From Hypanus sabinus (Eukaryota), in contig NC_082715.1 of assembly GCF_030144855.1 (NCBI RefSeq), forward strand, positions 100,440,001 to 100,504,000: a stretch of DNA of 64,000 bases. Reading direction: 5' to 3'. Below the pieces are notes generated by a model. The model did not search any database. It saw nothing but the letters and a program-made list of their open reading frames with translations, and was not told where the DNA came from. Below, piece by piece: positions 2,793-52,598 of this stretch. Every line of letters starts with the position of its first letter. Position 1 is the stretch's first letter. The translations under genes and the position numbers were made by a program.

Positions 2793-3210
2793 GTTTTTTT
2801 TTGTAATTTATTTTTTTATTGAAGTTCATTATTAAACAAACATTTCCATAAGATGTATTTCAGACATTGTACATATATATCATATAATCATATATATCAC
2901 AAATCTCCACAAAGTATTTATCTGGGTTATACACTTACAGAAAAGAGTGGAAAGAGAAAACAAGCAAAAGGAAAGAACTATGTACAAGTGGGAGTGATCT
3001 TTTTTTTACAACAGATTCATTGATTTGTGAGAATAAAATCAGGCCTATGAGGCATTATGTAATTAAACCATTTTTCCCATGCTTATGATTAACAGATGCT
3101 GTTATCTTTTCCATTTTGTAAATGTCCATTGTAATTTCCATCCATGTATTTAAAGTTGGGCTCTCCTGTGATAACCATTTCCTAATAAGAGTCTTTTTAC
3201 CAGCCACCAA
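2793..3210 (-). mobile_element. L1-clade LINE 3' fragment nested in the Nimb element
   Basis: Poly-T on + at the left end; minus strand encodes WMEITMDIYKMEKITA, resembling an L1 ORF2 C-terminus. Confidence 0.55.
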
Positions 3211-4057
3211 CAGTATATTCATTAAAATTCTAAGCCAGTTATATACACTGACCGAAAATAGGGTGGAAGTAAGCTTCCTTTGGGTTCCTGCTCAGTGTGG
3301 TGTGGAGGGTAATGAAAAAGTGGACATTAAACAATCACCCAAATTGTCTATAATAGAGGTCCAGATCCCTCTAAGTAAAGCAGAAGTCAAAAGCATTATA
3401 AAAACACGTATTGAGGAGACATGGCAGAAGCACTGGGATGAGAGTGAAACAGGGAGACAATTGTACACAATACAAAGGCAAGGCAGATACCAAAGAATAT
3501 CAGGTGGGCATAGAAAGACAGAAGTGATAGAACATAGAATAGTACAGCACATTACAGGCCCTTCGGCCCACAATGTTGTGCCGACTCTCAAAACCTGCCT
3601 CCCATATAACCCCCCACCTTGAATTCCTCCATATACCTGTCTAGTACTCTCTTAAACTTCACTAGAGTATCTGCCTCCACCACTGACTCAGGCAGTGCAT
3701 TCCACGCACCAACCACTCTCTTAGTGAAAAACCTTCCTCTAATATCCCCCTTGAACTTCCCTCCCCTTACCTTAAAGCCATGTCCTCTTGTACTGAGCAG
3801 TGGTGCCCTGGGGAAGAGTCCACTCTGTCTATTCCTCTTAATATCTTGTACACCTCTATCATGTCTCCTCTCATTCTCCTCTCCAAAGAGTAAAGCCCTA
3901 GCTCCCTTAATCTTTGATCATAATCCATTCTCTCTAAACCAGGCAGCATCCTGGTAAATCTCCTCTGTACCCTTTCCAATGCTTCCACATCCTTCCTGTA
4001 CTGAGGCGACCAGAACTGGACACAGTACTCCAAGTGTGGCCTAACTAGAGTTTTATA

Positions 4058-4203
4058 AACACAAAAATACAACTGCAGAAGCTGTGGATCAAAGAATACG
4101 TACACAACGCTGGATTACTGATGAAGGGTCTCGGCCTGAAACGTTGGCTACTCTTTCTCACGGATTCTGCCTGGCCTGCTGAGTTCATCCAGCGTTGTGT
4201 ACA
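4058..4203. mobile_element. Short Penelope-derived foldback element with 12-bp TSD, nested in CR1
   Basis: TSD TAGAGTTTTATA at 4046-4057 and 4204-4215; internal inverted repeat gtacacaacgctggat / atccagcgttgtgtac; contains a hammerhead-like motif. Confidence 0.75.
4118..4145 (+). ncRNA. Minimal hammerhead ribozyme-like core
   Basis: CTGATGA-agggtctcggcct-GAAA-cgtt: conserved CUGANGA and GAAA boxes around a short stem-loop, followed by palindromic ACGT and an NUH triplet. Stem I is disrupted in this copy. Confidence 0.6.
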
Positions 4204-7200
4204 TAGAGTTTTATAGAGCTGCATCATTACGTCGCGTCTCTTAAACTCTATCCCTCAACTTATGAAAGCTAACACCCCATTAGCTTTCTTAACTACCCTA
4301 TCTACCTGTGAGGCAACTTTCAGGGATCTGTGGACATGTACCCCCAGATCCCTCTGCTCCTCCACACTACCAAGTATCCTGCCACTCACTTTGTACTCTG
4401 CCTTGGAATTTGTCCTTCCAAAATGTACCATCTCACACTTCTCTGGGTTGAACTCCATCTGCCACTTCTCAGCCCACTTCTGCATCCTATCAATGTCTCT
4501 CTGCAATCTTTGACAATCCTCAACACTATCTACAACACCACCAATCTTTGTGTCGTCTGCAAACTTGCCAACCCACCCTTCTACCCCAGCATCCAGGTTG
4601 TTAATAAAAATCACAAAAAGTAGAGGTCCCAGAACAGATCCTTGTGGGACATCACAAGTCACAACCCTCCAATCTGAACATACTCCCTCCACCACGACCC
4701 TCTGCCTTCTGCAGGCAAGCCAATTCTGAATCCACCTGGCCAAACTTCCCTGGATCCCATGCCTTCTGACTTTCTGAATAAGCCTACCGTGTGGAACCTT
4801 GTCAAATGCCTTACTAAAATCCATGTAGATCACATCCACTACACTACCCTCATCTATATACCTGGTCACCTCTTCAAAGAACTCTATCAGGCTTGTTAGG
4901 CACAATCTGCCCTTCACAAAGCCATGCTGACTGTCCCTGATCAGACCATGATTCTCTAAATGTCCATAGATCCTATCGCTAAGAATCTTTTCCAACAGCT
5001 TCCCCACCACAGACGTAAGGCTCACTGGTCTATCATTACCTGGACTATCCCTACTACCTGTTTTGAACAAGGGGACAACATTCGCCTCCCTCCAATCCTC
5101 CAGTACCATTCCCATGGACAACGAGAACATAAAGATCCTAGCCAGGGGCTCAGTAATCTCTTCCCTTGCCTCGTGGAGCAGCCTGGGGAATATTCTGTCA
5201 GGCCCCGGGGACTTATCTGTTCTAATGTATTTTAACAACTCCAGCACTTCCTCTCCTTTAATATCAACATGCTCCAGAACATCAACCTCACTCATATTGT
5301 CTTCACCGTCAACGTTCCCTCTCAGTGGTGAATACCGAAGAGAAGTATTCATTGAGGACATCGCTCACTTCCACAGCTTGCAGGCACATCTTCCCACCTT
5401 TATCTCTAATCGGTCCTACCTTCACTCCTGTCATCCTTTTGTTCTTCACATAATTGAAGAATACCTTGGGGTTTTCCTTTACCCTACTCGCCAAGGCCTT
5501 CTCATGCCCCTTTCTTGCTCTTCTCAGCCCCTTCTTAAGCTCCTTTCTTGCGACCCTATATTCCTCAATAGACCCATCTGATCCTTGCTTCCTAAACCTC
5601 ATGTATGCTGCCTTCTTCCACCTGACTAGATTTTCCACTTCACTTGTCATCCATGGTTCCTTCACCCTACCATTCTTTATCTTCCTCACTGGGACAAATT
5701 TATCCCTAACATCCTGCAAGAGATCCTTAAACATCGACCACATGTCCATAGTATATTAACCTGCAAAAACATCATCCCAATTCACACCCACAAGTTCTAG
5801 CCTTATAGCCTCATAATTTGCCCTTCCCCAATTAAAAATTTTCCTATCCTCTCTGATTCTATCCTTTTCCATGATGATGCTAAAGGTCAGGGAGCAATGA
5901 TCACTGTCTCCCATATGCTCACCCACTGTCAGATCTGTGACCTGACCCAGTTCGTTACCTATACTAGATCTAGTATGGCATTCCCCCTAGTCATTCTGTC
6001 AACATACTGTGACAGGAATCCATCCTGGACACACTTAACAAATTCTGCCCCATCTAAACCCTTGGAACTAATCAAGTGCCAATCAATATTAGGGAACTTA
6101 AAGTCACCCATGATAACAACCCTGTTATTTTTGCACCTTTCCAAAATCTGCCTCCCAATCTGCTCCTCGGTATCTCTGCTGCTACCAGGGGGCCTATAGA
6201 ATACCCCCAATAGAGTAACTGCTCCTTTCCTGGTCCTGACTTCCACCTATACTGACTCAAAAGAGGATCCTGCTACATTACCCACACTTTCTGCAGCTGT
6301 AATAGTATCCCTGACCAATAATGCCACACCTCCTCCCCTTTTCCCCCCTCTCTATCCCTTTTAAAGCACTGAAATCCAGGAATATTCAGAATCCATTCCT
6401 GCCCTGGTGCCAGCCAAGTCTCCGTAATGGCCACTACACCATAATTCCATGTATGTATCCAAGCTCTCAGTTCATCACCTTTGTTCCTGATGCTTCTTGC
6501 ATTGAAGTACACATACTTTAGTCCTTCTCTCTTACTACCTTTATACCCTTTATTCTGCTGCTCTTCTCAAAGCCTCTCTATATGTTAGATCTGGTTTTAC
6601 TCCATGCATTTCTTTCACTGCTCTATCGCTCCGGGTCCCATCCCCCTTGCAAATTAGATTAAACCCTCCCGAACCATGCTAGCAAACCTACCAGCAAAGA
6701 TACTGCTCCCCCTCGAGTTCAGGTGCAACCCATCCAATCTGTACAGGTCCCACCTTCCCCAGAAGAGATCCCAATGGTCTAAAAATATAAAACCCTGCCC
6801 CCTGCACCAACTCCTCAGCCACGCATTCAACTGCCATCTCCTCCAATTCTTACCATCACTATCATGTAGTACTGGCAGCAATCCTGAGAACGCCACCCTT
6901 GAGGTCCTGTTCTTCAGCCTTCTGCCTAGTTCCCGAAACTCACACTTTAGGACCTCATCCCTCTTCCTGCCTATGTTGTTGGTCCCAACATGTATCACGA
7001 CTTCTGGTTGCTTTCCCTCTCGTACCAGGATGTCATGCACCCGGTCAGAGACATCCCAGACCCTGGCACCCGGGAGGCAACAAACCATGCGTGTTTCCTT
7101 CTCACGTCCACAAAATCTCCTGTCTGCTCCCCTGACTATAGAGTCTCCAATGATGACAGCTCTTCTCTTCTCTGTCCCATCCTTCTACACCACAGGGTCA

Positions 7201-8400
7201 GACTCAGTGCCCGAGGCCCTGCCACCTTGGGTCACACCTGGTCGGTCATCCTCACCAACAGCATCCAGGACAGTAAACTTATTATTCAGGGGAGTGGCTA
7301 CAGGGGTGCTCTGCACTACCTGTCTACTCTCCTTCGCTTTCCCCCCTCATCAGTTCATCAGTTGTTCATCAACAGTTGATCATTAGTTGTTTAAGAATTG
7401 GACATACAAGTCTTAATTACACATTATATAAAATTGGGAAATATCAAACTGGGTTGTCTTAATACTGTAATCAACCAGAAACAGTTGAACATGTATTGAA
7501 AAAATGAAAGAAGTATCAATGAGAAAGAGTGAAGATGGTAGGAGCATTTAAGATAAACAAAAAAATTGCTGTGGGTATAGAAAACATTTCAAGTGGGAGT
7601 TCAAGAGAAATACGGACCTATATCATGAAGTATCTGAAAGACTCTGGTTCATTATATAGAACTTAGGAAATGCAATTCTTTTCATTCCTCCTGTTTATCA
7701 AATGATCCACACTCCAGTCCAGTAGGTGGCGGTAATGCACCTTAAAGCTGGTTTGCCAACCGCCATAAAACAGCACAAGAAGAAGAAGAAGAAGATACAA
7801 GGGTAACAATGATTTCAGTCGCTGCTATCAAGGTGGCATAGGAGGGGCATTTTTCCATACTGCGTAGGGGTGGCGCAGGAACCTCTGCTGCCTCCTCGTG
7901 CAGAGACCTGAGTCGGATCCTGAAGGGCAGTTTACATGGTGGGCCCCTGGGCTTCTGCTGGAGACTCAAGATTCCAAAAGTGCACTGGACGGGTGGGTTA
8001 ATTAGCTACTGTAAATTACCTCGTGGTGCAAGTGAGAGAAGAATCAAGTTCATGTGTACATAACATTAGCAAAAATACATAGGGTATAAGTGCTATGAAA
8101 ATTAGCTTTTGCAGCACAGTGGCACAGTAAATTACATACTGACAAACATAATTTAACATATACTATACATAACTTACATGGCAAAATAAGCATAACAAAA
8201 CTAATGCAAGTTGAGAGAGAGAAAGAGAGAAACAGAAATATAGTCCAAGGCAGTGTGAGGTTTTTCAGGTCAGTTCAAGAAACTGATGATAGTGGGGAAG
8301 AAGGTATTATTGAATCTTGAGATGTGGGTCTTCAGGCTCCTGCATCTTTTGCCTAATGGCAGTGCCGGGAAAAGGGCATGGTCCAGATAATGGAGATAGT

Positions 8401-14832: not shown

Positions 14833-15701
14833 CCAACCCCCACAGAACAACACTAGTCACCAGCAGCTAACCAGAAAAGGTTTCCTTTATTCTCATACTT
14901 CGTCTCCCTCCAGGCAGCCAATCTTCTATGCATGCTAGTACTTTTCCTATATTACCATGGCACTTAACTTGTTTAAAGTAAAAATTCAAAGTAAATTTTA
15001 TTACTGGAGTACATGTATGTCACCACATACATTCCTGAAATTCATCTTTCTGCCAGCATACTCTGCATATCTATAGAAAAGTAACTACAAGACAAATTTG
15101 AAAGATCAACCAGAACACAATTAACAGTGCAAATGCAAACATAAATAAATAGCGCTAAATAATCTGATCACGAAATAACAAGATAAAAAGTCCTTAAAAT
15201 GAGATCATTAGTTGTGGAAACATCTCAAAGGATGGGCAAGTGAGTGTAGTTATCCGTTTTTGTTCAAGAGCCTGATGGTTGTGGGGTAGTAACTCTTCCT
15301 GAACCTGGTAGTGTGAGTCCTGAGACTCTTGTACTTTCTACCTGAAGGCAGTAGCAAGAAAGGAGAATAGTCTGGGTGGTGAGGATCTCTGATGGTGGAT
15401 GCTGCTTTCCTACAACAGTGTTTCATGTAGATATACCCAGTGGTTGAGAGGGTTTACCTGTGATGCACTGGGCCAAAATCCACTACCTTTTGTAGATTTT
15501 CTGTTCAAAGGCATTGGTGGTTCCGTACCAGTCCATAACGCAGCCAGTCAATACACTCTCCATTACATATCTATATGTCAAAGTTTTAGATGTATTTCAT
15601 CAAATAATTCCAACAGGTTTGTCAGACAAAATTTCCCCTTAAAGAAATTATGCTAACTTTAGCCTATTTTATCACTGCCTCCTGTACACTGAAACCTCAT
15701 C

Positions 15702-16480
15702 AGTTCGGATTCTGCTGCTGCCTTAGAGACTATAAAAGGGAATAAACCAAAAGCTCGTTCTGACATAGTTTTTGAAATTCTCTCAGCTTTGTTTAAAGTG
15801 GGGAAGATACGTTGTGAAGTCAGATTTACATGGATACCTGGGCATGCTGGGATGGAGGGAAATGAAATTATGGATGGCATTGCAAAGTTTTCCTTACAGA
15901 GCAGGCAAGTAGGAATTAGAATACCCTTAGGCAAAGCAGAATTGAGAAGTAAGATTAAAAAAAAAGGTATAGAAAAGCAATGGCAGGAGGATTGGAAAAA
16001 TGAATTAAAGTGAAGGCATTTCTTTTCTAGTCACCCACTAGTTAAAAAGGTCTCAGACTGTTACTCTTTAAATCGTAGTGATATTGTGAAATTAACAAGA
16101 TTAGGTTGGGACATTGCAGGCTAAGCTATTACTTAAAGATAATAGGAAGACATCCTACTGGATTATGTGACTGGTAGTCCAGCGACAGTTTAGCATGTTT
16201 TGCTGAGTTGTAATCGATATTAAATTGAGAGAAGCACATTGTTCAAGAGGCTATCTGACTTAAATGTATTTTGTTTTTCTGTTAAAACTTTGTTTGGACA
16301 CCAAGAGAACCACCATCTGATTGAAACGTTTATTATTCTGTTTCTACGTGCGGCTAGTGTATACTCAAGAATTTGAGTTTCTTGAAACTCTGTAATTAAT
16401 TATACATCCTGCAGAGGGCAGTAATACGCCTTGATGCGTCTAAACCACCGGAAATAGAAGAAGAAGAAGAAGAAGAAGAA
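15702..16480 (+). mobile_element. Second, divergent Nimb/I-group LINE 3' fragment
   Basis: SDSAAAL..FTWIPGHAGMEGNE RNase H C-terminal half, RL.LGH motif, (GAA)n tail; degenerate TSD gaaacctcatc (15691-15701) / gaaaccccaac (16481-16491); inserted in a minus-strand CR1. Confidence 0.8.
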
Positions 16481-17539
16481 GAAACCCCAACCCTAATAAT
16501 GGACTCCAACATCTTCCCAACCACTCAATTCCAGCTAACTGGCCTATAACTCTTTTTTTCTGCCCCCCCTTCTTAAAGAGTGGAATGACATTTGCAATTT
16601 TCCAGTCTTCCAGAATCTAGTGATTCTTTAAAGATAACTACTGAAGCCTCCACAGTCTCTTCAGCCAGCTTTTGCAGAACCCTGGAGTGTAGTCCATCTG
16701 GTCCAGGTGACCTATCCACCTTCAGATCTTTAAGCTTCCCAAGCATCTTCTCCTTAGCAATAGCAACTACACTCACTTTTTCCCCCACACTGGAACGAGC
16801 CATACTGTTCATGAGTTCCACAATAAAGTCTGATGGAAAGTACTTACTGAATTTGTTCCCATTTCTTTATCCAGTCTCCAATAGCAAGGTATCTGACTGC
16901 CAGGCACTACAAAGGATTGTGAGGACTGCCGAGGTCTCTCTTCCACCCATCCAAGAGATTTACCAGGAGTGCTGTGTACACAGGGCACTTAACATTGTCA
17001 AATATCCTTCCCATCTGTCCATTAGGCAAGTGGTACCATAGTATTAGGGCAAGGTCTGTTAGGATGGGGAAAAGCTTCTTCTCCCGTGCTGTAAAACCTC
17101 TGAACTCTCTGCCACCACCCAGGTCTCACCACATATGAATCACCAGTAGCAATATAATGCTTACTGTTTAACTTGTGACATACTGAATGCAATTAATTAT
17201 TTGTAGTAATACTACTTTATGTGGTGACTGTGAATTATATCTACTGTGTTGTGCACCTTGGAACAGAGGAATGTTGTTTTGTTGGCGATATATATGTATA
17301 CGACTGAAATGACAATAAATGAACTTGAACTTGAATATTTTCCAGTGGTCCAATATCAGCTCTCTGAAAAAAACTTACAGTATTCTCTTTTATATTATTG
17401 GCTGGACTCAAATTGCATTTTGTAAGACGGTGATGATAATGAACATGCAATTACAGAGAGAGTTTGCAACAAACCCAAGTAAAAACCTCACTACACATGG
17501 ACAATGTCACCATCTTCTGCTTGGCTCCCTGGTCAGTTC

Positions 17540-27115: not shown

Positions 27116-27865
27116 TCACATTGAGTGAGTGCTTGGAGCAGCCTTCACAATGCCATTCCTAAATGTGTCTGTATTACAATATCCTGAATCACATTTGCAC
27201 TTGAGCCTCGGCTCTCTCTTGCAAGGCCTCTTCTGCCAGGTATCCCTGAAGTGCTTGATCACCAAGTAACTCATCTCACAGACGTTCAGCAGGACACACA
27301 GCGACGAGGAGACGGCCATGCAGTACAGAAAGATTGTCTTCTCTGTTGGCCGACCGACAAAACAATCCACTGTGTTGGGGCAGGGTGCAACCTCACATTT
27401 CAAAAGGCGGGGAACTGAGAAACCATGAAACATCCAGTGAAAAATTAACAAGGAGCCGATCTCAACAATGGTTTTGAACACCAGGCTAAAGAAGTAGGTC
27501 CACCAGAGACCCCCACCTAAGTCCGCTTTGTCTTTGTACAGTTTCTTATGGAGCTTCTTTTCCCGCCGCTCCCTGTAACCCACATGCATGACAACCATAA
27601 GGGAAGGAGTAGAAACCATGATAAGTTGCAGAGCCCACAGTCTTGCATGTGACACAGGGAAGAAATAGTCAAAACACACATTCTCACAGCCGGGTTGCTC
27701 CGAGTTGCAGGTGAAGTCCTTCTGATCGTCGCTCCAGACTCGTTCTGCTGCCACGACGTAGACTAGGACCCTGAATATGAATACAACACTCAGCCAAATT
27801 CTTCCAACTACTGTGGAGTACTGATTCACCCCACTCAAAACATCTTGCAGCAAACCCCAGCTCAT
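27116..27865 (-). CDS. GJB7: Gap junction beta protein (connexin), GJB7/Cx25-like, 249 aa, single coding exon
   Basis: Intact ORF starting [18 protein letters not shown], with connexin E1 C-x6-C-x3-C ([12 protein letters not shown]), E2 C-x4-C-x5-C ([12 protein letters not shown]), RLWALQLI and RPTEKTIF motifs. The very short cytoplasmic loop ([14 protein letters not shown]) resembles human Cx25. Good Kozak context (gcaaccATG). Opposite-strand neighbour of SMIM8, as for human GJB7. Confidence 0.9.
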
Positions 27866-49387: not shown

Positions 49388-52300
49388 TTTCTTTCTTTCT
49401 TTAATTTTTATTAATATTAGTAATATGGACAGAATACAAATGATATATTGAAAATTACCAGCATACAAATTCCATTACATATGAAAAAAACATACATAAT
49501 AGTTACAATATAAATGAGTTTACCAAGACATAAGCCATAAAATATGTATGAACATGGTAAGTCTAAATATTTCATAATATATGATATAAAGAAAAAAAAA
49601 GAAAATAAAAAATATATGTAATGCAAAACTAGCTAATCTAATCACTAATATAGAAGAAAAAAGCAAAAAAGAGAAAAAAAGAGGGCTGTTTATAATATCT
49701 CACAAAAATAAGTATTCATCAATGCCGTCACTTCCGCTCCTCTCAACATACATAAGCTAAAAGCTGGGAAATCAAATGAACTTGGCACAGGGTCATATTA
49801 CATCATATGAAAATGTTGAATAAATGGTCTCCATAACTTTTCAAATTTAATAGAAGTCTCAAAAGTACCACTTCTAATTTTTTCTAAATTTAAACATAAC
49901 ATAGTTTGAGCGAACCAATTAAATACAGTGGGAGGATTAATTTCCTTCCAATTCAACAATATAGATCTTCTAGCCATCAAAGTTAGAAATGCAATCATTC
50001 GACGGGCAGAAGAAGATAAATGCAGTGAATCTAACATTGGTAAACCAAAAATTGCGGTAATAGGATGAGGTTGTAAATCAATATTCAAAACAGCAGAAAT
50101 AATATCAAAAATATCTTTCCAATATTTCTCCAAAAATGAACAAGACCAAAACATATGAGTTAAAGACGCAATTTCAGAATGACATCACAAATAGGACTAA
50201 TATGAGAGTAAAAATGAGCTAATTTATCCTTGGACATATGGGCCCTATGTACGACCTTAAATTGTATTAATGAATGTTTGGCACATAACGATGATGTATT
50301 AACTAATTGAAGAATTCTATCCCAATTCTCACCAGAAATACTAAGACTAAGCTCTTTCCCAATCCTTTTTTGTCATAAAGAGGCTCTGAACGTATCTTCA
50401 TAATTATATTATAAAGTTTTGAAATAAGCCCTTTTTGAAAAGGGTCTAATTCAAATAAACTCTCCAAAATATCTGAAGGCACAAAATTTGGAAATGTAGG
50501 GAGTACAGAACTTAAAAAATGTCTAATCTGTAAATATCTAAAAAAAATGAAATCTAGGCAAGTTATATTTGTTGGATAATTGATCAAAAGACATGAAACA
50601 ATTGTCTAAAAATAAATCAGAAAATCTTAGTAATCCCTTAGTTTTCCAAGCCGAATAAGCTTGATCTATAATGGAAGGGTGGAAAAAACAATTAGATACA
50701 ATAGGACTATTTAAAACGAATTGAGTCAACCCAAAAAATCTCTGAAATTGAAACCATATATGCAAAGTATGTTTAACTATCGGGTTGTCAATTCGTTTCG
50801 GCAATTTAGAAAGAGCAAAAGGGAGAGAAGTCCCTAAAATAGAACCCAGAGCATAAGCTGATACCGATTTAGTTTCTAAACTCACCCAACAAGGTCCGAA
50901 AGATCCACCCCCATCTTTCAGCCAACATAACAAATATCTAATATTAACTGCCCAATAGTAAAATCTGAAATTAGGTAATGCTAACCCACCTTCCTTTTAC
51001 AAACAAAGGGTTGAACTTCAAATGGAACATAGTTTATTACTTACATCCTCGATTGAAAAATCAATTAATGAAAACTAAATCTGATTTTTATATACATAGT
51101 GATAAATCTGGTAAACTGTTAGCTAGTCAATTGAAGAATGTTTTGGTTAAATGTCAAATCACTAAGATTGGTCAGTAGAATGGGAATCTGACAGTTAATC
51201 ATGATGAGATAAATAAGGCATTTCAAGACTTCTATACCTCCCTGTATCAATCTGAATTTCCTCAAGGTCATAATACTATGTCCGATTTTCTTGGGAAATT
51301 AAATTTTCCAAGATTATCATCTGATGATCGTTTGATATTGGATACTCCTATTACGGATTTAGAAATTAAAGGGGCTATTTCCTCAATGAATTCTGGGAAA
51401 GCACCGGGTCCAGATGGTTATACAGTTGAATTTTTAAAAAAAATTTCCGCTACTCTTTCCCCTTGGTTAGGTAAGGTTTTTGAGGAAGCCATTAGATTGG
51501 GGAATTTGCCACAATCTTTTTATAGAGCTTCCATTTCTCTAATAGTGAAGAAAGATAAAGACCCTACTAACTGTGCTTCCTATAGACCTATATCTTTATT
51601 GAATGTAGACTCCAAGATTTTTTCCAAGTTACTGGCATCTAGATTGGAGAAGGTATTACCCAAAATTATTTCAGATGATCAAACCGGTTTTATTAAAAAT
51701 CGTTATTCTTTTTTTAACATTAGGAGATTGTTGAATATTGTTTATACTCCCTCACATGACACTTCAGAATGTGTGATTTCATTAGATGCGGAGAAAGCAT
51801 TTGATAGAGTTGAATGGCCTTACTTATTTAATGTGTTGGATAAGTTTAATTTTAGTCCGATATCTATATCATGGATTAAATTGATTTATCATACTCCAGT
51901 AGCCTCAGTGTTTACCAATAATCAAAGATCTCCCTTTTTTCACCTATTTCGGGGCACTAGACAAGGATGTCCTCTTAGTCCATTACTATTTAACATTCCC
52001 TTAGAACCTTTGGCAATTGCCATCAGACAATCACAGGATATTTTGGGAATTAATCGTGGGACAGATATTCTTAAGTTATCTTTGTATGCAGATGATTTAT
52101 TACTATTCATTTCTAACCCGGAGAAATCCATCCCAGCAGTTTTATCATTATTGGCTCAATTTAGTGAGTTTTCTGGATACAAGTTAAATCTTAATAAAAG
52201 TGAATTGTTTCCTTTGAATAAACGGTTCCCAATTTATGGAAATTTACCTTTTAAATTAGTTAATGATTCTTTTACTTATTTAGGGATCAAAATCACAAAA

Positions 52301-52598
52301 AAACCATAAAGACTTATTTAGATTTAATTTTTTTACCATTAATTGATCAGATTAAAGATTTGTTTACTAAGTGGTCACCTTTATCTTTATCCCTAATAGG
52401 TAGGATTAATGCTATTAAGATGGTTATTTTACCTAAGTTTTTATATATTTTTCAAGCGATACCAATTTTTATCCCGAAATCTTTTTTTTACTAATGTTGA
52501 CTCTAAAATTTCTTCATATATATGGCAGAATAAAAATCCCAGGTTAGGTAAATATATATTTACAGAAGACAAAAAAGGAAGGCGGGTTAGCATTACCT
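49388..52598 (-). mobile_element. L1 LINE with 5' inversion (3' part on minus 49388-~50998; RT part inverted, on plus ~50999-52598)
   Basis: Plus ORF 51278-52309 is an L1 RT (PGPDG, YRPISLLN, DAEKAFD, RQGCPLSP, YADD). The minus strand holds the ORF2 C-terminus (HMFWSC, NLEKI) and an A-rich tail. Candidate TSD AATTTTCT at 49380-49387 and 52599-52606. Confidence 0.9.

Follow-up and report, generated by a model that had tools for sequence, protein, structure and literature searches.

A CTCF-like motif at the 3' ends of two I/Nimb-like LINEs appears to be part of one inherited terminal module

Introduction

The 3' untranslated regions (UTRs) of 'stringent' LINEs contain stem-loops that are recognized by the element's own reverse transcriptase, as in eel UnaL2, zebrafish ZfL2 (L2 clade), R2 and SART1. 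Among the LINEs related to the elements described here, Nimb families are reported from insects, molluscs, teleosts and a turtle, with relics in tetrapods and the coelacanth (PMC9004415).

In mammals, retroelements are also known as carriers of CTCF sites, SINE B2 and others among them (Schmidt et al. 2012, PMC3368268; PMC9902604). The same CTCF motif is used by skates, with an orientation code, at TAD boundaries; the study that described this called CTCF motifs inside ATAC peaks with the matrix MA0139.1 and a threshold of 8 (PMC10115646).

How do the LINE ends of the present locus compare with these systems? The window, by which we mean the whole 64-kb stretch of DNA that was analysed, contains two LINE ends on the plus strand, elements 1 and 2, both with a CTCF-like motif shortly before a microsatellite tail. 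A preliminary description had taken the two motifs as a sign of selection for protein binding at the DNA level. The comparisons reported below point instead to a module of the LINE itself, inherited by both elements.

Results

The features that define the two LINE ends are the following.

15693–16010, plus strand: RNase H remnant of element 2 ORF2, an open stretch of 106 aa; Pfam RNase_H, E 4.2e-5
16239–16376, plus strand: C-terminal end of element 2 ORF2, with the stop codon at 16374–16376; 52% identical to residues 206–249 of P0001
16377–16455, plus strand: complete 79-nt 3' UTR of element 2, between the ORF2 stop and the tail; alignable with the UTRs of L001 and L052
16456–16483, plus strand: (AGA)9.3, the (GAA)n tail with which element 2 ends; 100% matches by Tandem Repeats Finder
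7777–7795, plus strand: (AAG)6.3 tail of element 1; tandem repeat

Judged by their domains, both elements are 5'-truncated, I/Nimb-like non-LTR retrotransposons (LINEs) with an RNase H remnant. The window copies keep the RNase H and the C-terminus and are missing the RT domain; the full-length relatives P0036 and P0068 have Exo_endo_phos, RVT_1 and RNase_H, which is the architecture of the I/Nimb type. For the RNase H remnant of element 2 there were 1345 library matches, the best of them 54% identical, while the protein Atlas returned generic RNase H clusters only and a word-indexed protein search with the 74-aa ORF gave zero candidates. Since this remnant is only 42% identical to that of element 1 (3122–3619), the two elements belong to different families. 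The preliminary description was thus right to speak of a second, divergent family with a strong CTCF-like motif at the equivalent place.

Where does the UTR of element 2 begin? ORF2 runs to 16373, which aligns with the last residue of the 249-aa relative P0001, so the true 3' UTR is 16377–16455 only, and the CTCF-like motif lies in the middle of this very short UTR. The upstream sequence, in which the two elements had been called otherwise very different, is by the same alignment mostly diverged ORF2 coding sequence and not UTR. The ORF2 stop of element 1, read from the sequence, is at 7664–7666, and its 3' UTR measures 110 nt.

Other repeats surround and interrupt the two elements. Element 1 is split at about 3767–7300 by a minus-strand CR1/L2-like LINE, which contains an esterase-like ORF1 (6654–7088), endonuclease pieces (5959–6512) and a 368-aa RT ORF (4255–5361). 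Just upstream of the element 1 RNase H remnant there is a 38-bp GC-rich minisatellite (2330–2538; 5.4 copies, 95% identity). Behind the tail of element 2, the segment 16484–16700 is a hyper-abundant repeat with many internal deletion joints; its summed contig word depth is 4–5.6e5 in three species, about 100 times the LINE depth. An open 343-aa RT fragment of another LINE, L1-like by eye, lies at 51278–52309 on the plus strand.

How closely does the motif resemble a CTCF site? Both strands of the 64 kb were scored with a matrix of 19 columns that approximates JASPAR MA0139.1, and every score in bits given for CTCF here refers to this approximate matrix.

16405–16423, plus strand: CTCF-like 19-mer of element 2, containing CCTGCAGAGGGCAGTA; 18.2 bits, p 3.9e-7
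7716–7734, plus strand: CTCF-like 19-mer of element 1, for comparison; 21.2 bits, p 4.6e-8, the best in the window

The 16-mer CCTGCAGAGGGCAGTA occupies 16408–16423 on the plus strand and has no second exact copy within the 64-kb window. It agrees with the CTCF core CCASYAGRKGGCRS at 13 of 14 positions, the mismatch being T for A at position 3. It stands 33 nt from the (AGA)9 tail and is directly followed by TAATACGCC, with which it shares its final TA. In element 1 the motif CCAGTAGGTGGCGGT at 7719–7733 is followed by TAATGCACC at 7733–7741. The element 1 site ranks first in the 64 kb and the element 2 site second, ahead of a third match at 15.8 bits; matches of at least 18.2 bits are expected 0.05 times per 64 kb, both strands included. 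With its 18.2 bits element 2 lies above the thresholds usually applied to the core matrix for vertebrate CTCF sites, and both LINE tails would be called CTCF motifs in the skate study because their scores exceed its threshold of 8. Near-matches to the motif at 4700, 23331 and 56907 were also inspected; none is a LINE tail.

We conclude that the CTCF-like motif of element 2 is real and strong, and that it is no coincidence of random sequence. Its position and letters, a 13/14 match upstream of the (GAA)n tail, stand as first described, and the statement that chance does not explain it holds for random sequence. The common orientation of the two motifs, which had been remarked on, reflects only two LINE insertions on the plus strand. 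An intact connexin ORF of 249 aa, GJB-type by sequence, lies on the minus strand at 27116–27865, and both LINE tails are on its 3' side.

If two divergent LINE families both possess the motif, what else do their ends have in common? From TCC through GGCRGTAATRCRCCTTRAWGC the ends of elements 1 and 2 form a block at coding-level identity, and the remaining UTR is unalignable. This block belongs to a larger module, composed of the motif as its 5' part, GGCRGTAATRCNCC, a loop, a return arm, an A-rich linker and (GAA)n, which was found again at about 40 further LINE ends on Logan, ENA and JGI contigs. Its deepest-conserved core in element 2 is the following.

16417–16439, plus strand: GGCAGTAATACGCC, loop and GCGT, with a candidate inner stem ACGC 16426–16429 / GCGT 16436–16439; from comparison

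Four of the relatives were fetched via protein similarity, the motif not being used. In L003 (JGI metagenome) and L053 (Logan) an element-1-type end comes directly after the stop codon; in L001 and L052 (both Logan) an element-2-type end does. The core of element 2 is found also in L001 and in a variant form in L052, and the GGCRGTAATRCNCC core in element 1, L003 and L053. In elements 1 and 2, L001 and L003, four protein-anchored ends obtained ahead of the scan pattern described below or independently of it, UAAU is invariant; L053 has AAAU and L052 CAA in its place. The block is absent from another protein-anchored relative, L050, whose tail is (TTTAG)n; seven protein-anchored contigs (L002, L004, L048, L049, L051, L054 and L055) ended before the UTR and are uninformative. 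L050 is an RNase-H LINE about 40% identical, and its segment 2185–2260 has a hairpin, GUGCC-UGUU-GGCAC, then GTTAGGTGGCTGC and the (TTTAG)n tail; the octamer TAGGTGGC recurs in this segment, with the TAAT core missing.

The other ends came from a metagenome scan in which GGCRRTAATRCNCC had to be accompanied by four GAA units 15–45 nt away, nothing else being fixed. It gave 43 loci, seven of them unrelated (chance or prokaryotic) and about 35 LINE ends; a LINE ORF2 lies immediately upstream in nine of these ends. The approximately 35 ends share an upstream CACACTCCAGTCCAGTAGGT and a return arm TTGCCAACCGCCAT, neither of which the pattern required. Most element-1-type copies are from one metagenome project, and their conservation is partly recent common descent. 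Beyond the motif, the element-1 type conserves GTAATRCNCC downstream, the return arm ACCGCCA, and CACACTCCA upstream, in which a search by eye for the CTCF 'upstream motif' gave no convincing match. The conserved stretch thus exceeds any CTCF footprint, by about 10 nt on the upstream side and about 40 nt on the downstream side. A third family (L006:2759–2818, L009:72–123 on the minus strand, and L035:323–376) keeps TGGCAGTAATGCACC without the CTCF-like 5' half and has no return arm, its core running almost straight into the GAA tail. Viral contigs scanned for the element-2-type core gave 0 matches; Rfam has no family for the module, and a literature search for the core string found unrelated primers only.

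On the evidence of these alignments, we conclude that the CTCF-like similarity of elements 1 and 2 is the shared descent of one LINE 3'-terminal module. In element 2 this module extends over 16405–16449 and ends 6 nt from the tail, the position at which stringent LINEs have their 3' stem-loop.

Is the UTR constrained within the family of element 2? Logan contigs of three other species were compared with the window copy over 15700–16700, dozens of contigs per species covering element 2. There are 33 fixed differences between the window copy and the three species' contigs in 15747–16353 (5.4%), as against none, among the differences listed, in 16354–16445 (P about 0.007 by hand Poisson arithmetic). 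Nor does the motif, among the differences listed, depart anywhere from the family majority; in the three species it is thus present in the majority form and in many copies, as a CTCF site dispersed by a transposable element should be. Because the 33 differences fall in the ORF part and none of those listed in the UTR part, the UTR of element 2, motif included, is by this comparison the family majority form and more constrained among the masters than the ORF. Stronger constraint on the UTR is what is expected of a cis-acting end.

But is it the likeness to CTCF that is conserved? The motif might be a working CTCF site, kept in the LINE masters since binding helps the element, or used by the host, which would have co-opted copies as oriented insulators or loop anchors. 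Several observations fit. The two top matrix matches of the 64 kb coincide exactly with the two LINE tails, and the element 2 motif is kept in the family majority of three species. Most element-1-type copies score 12–20 bits in register, as against −24 to +6 for chance matches to the search pattern. At the 12 positions left unconstrained by the search, LINE conservation in the element-1 type tracks the information content of the CTCF matrix (Spearman 0.66, p 0.02), the direction predicted for CTCF. Skates read the motif at TAD boundaries (PMC10115646), and CTCF sites borne by transposable elements are well known in mammals (PMC3368268).

On the other hand, conservation for the sake of CTCF would keep the critical positions and let the degenerate ones vary across families, and the reverse is found in several places. 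In register, L053 and L003 score 12.9 bits each, L001 9.3, L052 −7.2, and the third family, whose 5' half is missing, −4 to −12. L001 and L052 are the nearest relatives of element 2, and in both the core of the module is kept while the CTCF-like half is weakened or lost: in L001 the near-invariant A is replaced by G and an R position holds T, and L052 has a 2-nt insertion in the core. Matrix position 9, which is 93% A for CTCF, is divided almost evenly in element-1-type copies, with A in 16 and T in 14, T being found throughout a subfamily that has CCAGTTGG at the motif. Conversely, matrix positions 7, 11, 12 and 17–19, degenerate for CTCF, are near-invariant in the LINE. The conserved stretch continues 20–40 nt past any CTCF footprint, and a complementary return arm lies within it. 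Finally, a site at the 3' end of copies that are mostly 5'-truncated and dead brings the element no benefit.

We consider it doubtful, on these sequences, that the motif is a working CTCF site in either sense, and selection for CTCF binding at element 2 is unsupported and improbable. The case made for such selection in the preliminary description was that the differences between the two motifs fall mostly at degenerate positions. Four of the five differences do so, but with 7 of 15 positions concerned the hypergeometric p is about 0.10 (by hand), and the argument is weak because three of the four are transitions, which are unable to leave the Y/R class. The two motifs are homologous parts of one module that is conserved well past the footprint, and families without the motif, named at the outset as evidence against selection, are in part supplied by the third family. 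The tempting inference that convergent retention shows CTCF selection is removed.

Does the module fold as RNA? The sequences of elements 1 and 2 suggest the following parts of a hairpin.

7726–7766, plus strand: predicted two-tier hairpin of element 1, outer stem 7726–7733 / 7759–7766 plus an inner GC/CC stem; MFE −17.6 kcal/mol, z −1.95
16444–16449, plus strand: candidate return arm ACCACC of element 2, with two central mismatches to GGCAGT at 16417–16422; from comparison with L001 and L052

The motif of element 1 pairs through its 3' half, GUGGCGGU (7726–7733), with ACCGCCAU (7759–7766), and the two arms enclose a small inner stem and a variable loop. The two-tier hairpin is the MFE fold also of L003 (−14.9 kcal/mol, z −2.75) and of L053 (−15.4 kcal/mol, z −1.94). 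When 32 element-1-type ends are aligned, 88% of cells are in standard pairs, compared with 20–62% when the partners are slid. G:C to A:U compensations occur among these ends at two pairs; the covariation is modest. One of them, GGCGA/TCGCC, is diagnostic of an entire subfamily and lies outside CpGs; the second involves paired CpGs, which could give the appearance of compensation by decaying independently. In alignment A2 (columns 24/44) the A/T split at matrix position 9 and the first loop base that follows GCACC vary together, the counts being U:A 12, A:U 9 and A:A 6; this may mean genuine pairing in another, local fold or no more than linkage between subfamilies. A CCAG–CUGG (loop) pairing, checked by eye, proved inconsistent across copies.

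The element-2 type behaves less uniformly. L001, the closest relative of element 2, has the same architecture in other letters, with GCAGU/ACUGC as the outer and ACGC/GCGU as the inner stem, and the first inner pair is G:C in the element-1 type and A:U in the element-2 type. At the position of the return arm L001 has ACTGC and L052 GCTGCC, each complementary to its own 5' arm, and the fold favoured in L052 is another hairpin, of 7 bp. For the window copy of element 2 the two-tier hairpin is not obtained (z +0.65); in the comparison with the three species the family majority was read on both sides of 16446–16496, a stretch passed over as repeat that takes in most of the return arm. A covariance model made from element-1-type ends gave element 2 no more than 9.7 bits (E 0.017 over 361 nt) and failed to detect L001 and L052. 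Across the families the picture of a conserved stem-loop with compensations is therefore mixed: the element-1 type and L001 show it, the window copy of element 2 does not, and L052 forms a different one.

Could the module act in cis without the long-range hairpin? It might form a local GNRA-type hairpin (GCG-GUAA-UGC closed by GG/CC), the return arm being used otherwise, or be a site for an ORF1 or ORF2 zinc-finger protein on the RNA or the first-strand cDNA. RNAalifold selects the local hairpin in preference to the long-range one. A G-to-A change, frequent in the 5' arm, makes an A:U pair out of G:U in the local fold, but in the long-range fold 6 of 9 copies have no compensation for it. The recourse of L052 to yet another hairpin also fits, as does the invariance of UAAU and GC-N-CC in a set whose search partly required them. 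However, the local hairpin is broken in the element-2 type, where UAAUAC introduces a C–A mismatch and where the inner stem of the long-range fold is compensated. In most copies the return arm of 8 nt is both conserved and able to pair; moreover, the MFE folds of three independent element-1-type ends are the long-range fold. We hold these versions of a cis-acting module to be rather unlikely.

Discussion

Our preferred explanation, to which we assign a probability of roughly 0.6, is that the motif is the 5' part of a conserved 3'-terminal cis-element of these LINEs, kept most likely for a role of the RNA in reverse transcription. The 3' UTR would be almost wholly one module, composed of a G-rich arm that reads GGTGGCGG or GGGCAG, UAAU, a short inner stem enclosing a variable loop, the return arm and the A-rich linker, after which (GAA)n begins. 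In the transcript the module would fold into the two-tier hairpin beside the tail; the element's own reverse transcriptase would recognize this hairpin and start target-primed reverse transcription, as in the 'stringent' LINEs, with the (GAA)n tail serving priming or slippage. That recognition by the reverse transcriptase is the role of the module is probable by analogy with the 3' ends of the L2 clade and of R2 and SART1.

What, then, is the origin of the resemblance to CTCF? It may arise from the G-rich arm together with the CCAG or CCTG just upstream. Elements 1 and 2 would share their CTCF-like letters because both inherited the module, and each inserted DNA copy would carry a predicted CTCF site as a by-product, the module being in every copy. 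That the block has no function at all, and is a leftover of common ancestry whose CTCF resemblance was a coincidence noticed afterwards, is highly improbable: a single ancestral event would suffice, so that the two motifs are not independent, and many transcription-factor motifs could have caught attention, but the block stands at coding-level identity between elements whose proteins are only 42% identical and whose flanking UTR is unalignable, it recurs in several subfamilies and in contigs of many unrelated samples, and the UTR has no fixed differences among those listed against 5.4% in the ORF.

A cis-element kept for reverse transcription may still have consequences for chromatin. The tails of two I/Nimb-like LINE families may have seeded many oriented, high-scoring CTCF sites in rays and skates, of which a fraction would be bound and act in loop extrusion; such sites would be a non-mammalian counterpart of the SINE B2 waves, unusual in that the site doubles as the RNA hairpin of the element. 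From the sequences at hand we think this unlikely. In CTCF motif annotation of cartilaginous fish, these LINE tails rank as top-scoring sites; analyses of TAD boundaries and motif orientation should mask them or test them explicitly, and if some copies are bound, they are a ready source of new oriented boundary elements. The module itself is a concrete, testable object of roughly 45–75 nt, common to RNase-H-bearing LINEs in many hosts and not in Rfam.

Three known systems may be compared with the present one. As in the mammalian SINE B2 sites, a retroelement contains a strong matrix match within its body, and each insertion adds a copy of it in the same orientation. The carrier is here a LINE 3' UTR and the site a predicted one; in addition, the motif of the window overlaps an RNA-level cis-element, and its CTCF-like half is lost in sister families.

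As in LINEs of the Nimb/I clade, endonuclease, RT and RNase H are present in the relative P0036, and the window copies keep the RNase H, a C-terminal tail and a microsatellite tail. The label I/Nimb-like follows from this domain architecture.

The closest parallel is with the stringent LINEs. The elements of the window differ from these in clade, being APE-RT-RNase H elements of I/Nimb-like type; their module, as read from DNA, has another sequence, a two-tier architecture and a (GAA)n tail, and the hairpin of element 2 is disrupted in the window copy. In both, on the other hand, a hairpin, here a predicted one that is clearest in the element-1 type, closes a short 3' UTR and is followed at once by a tail of short repeats, and in both the loop is variable, the stems are conserved and the element is common to related families.
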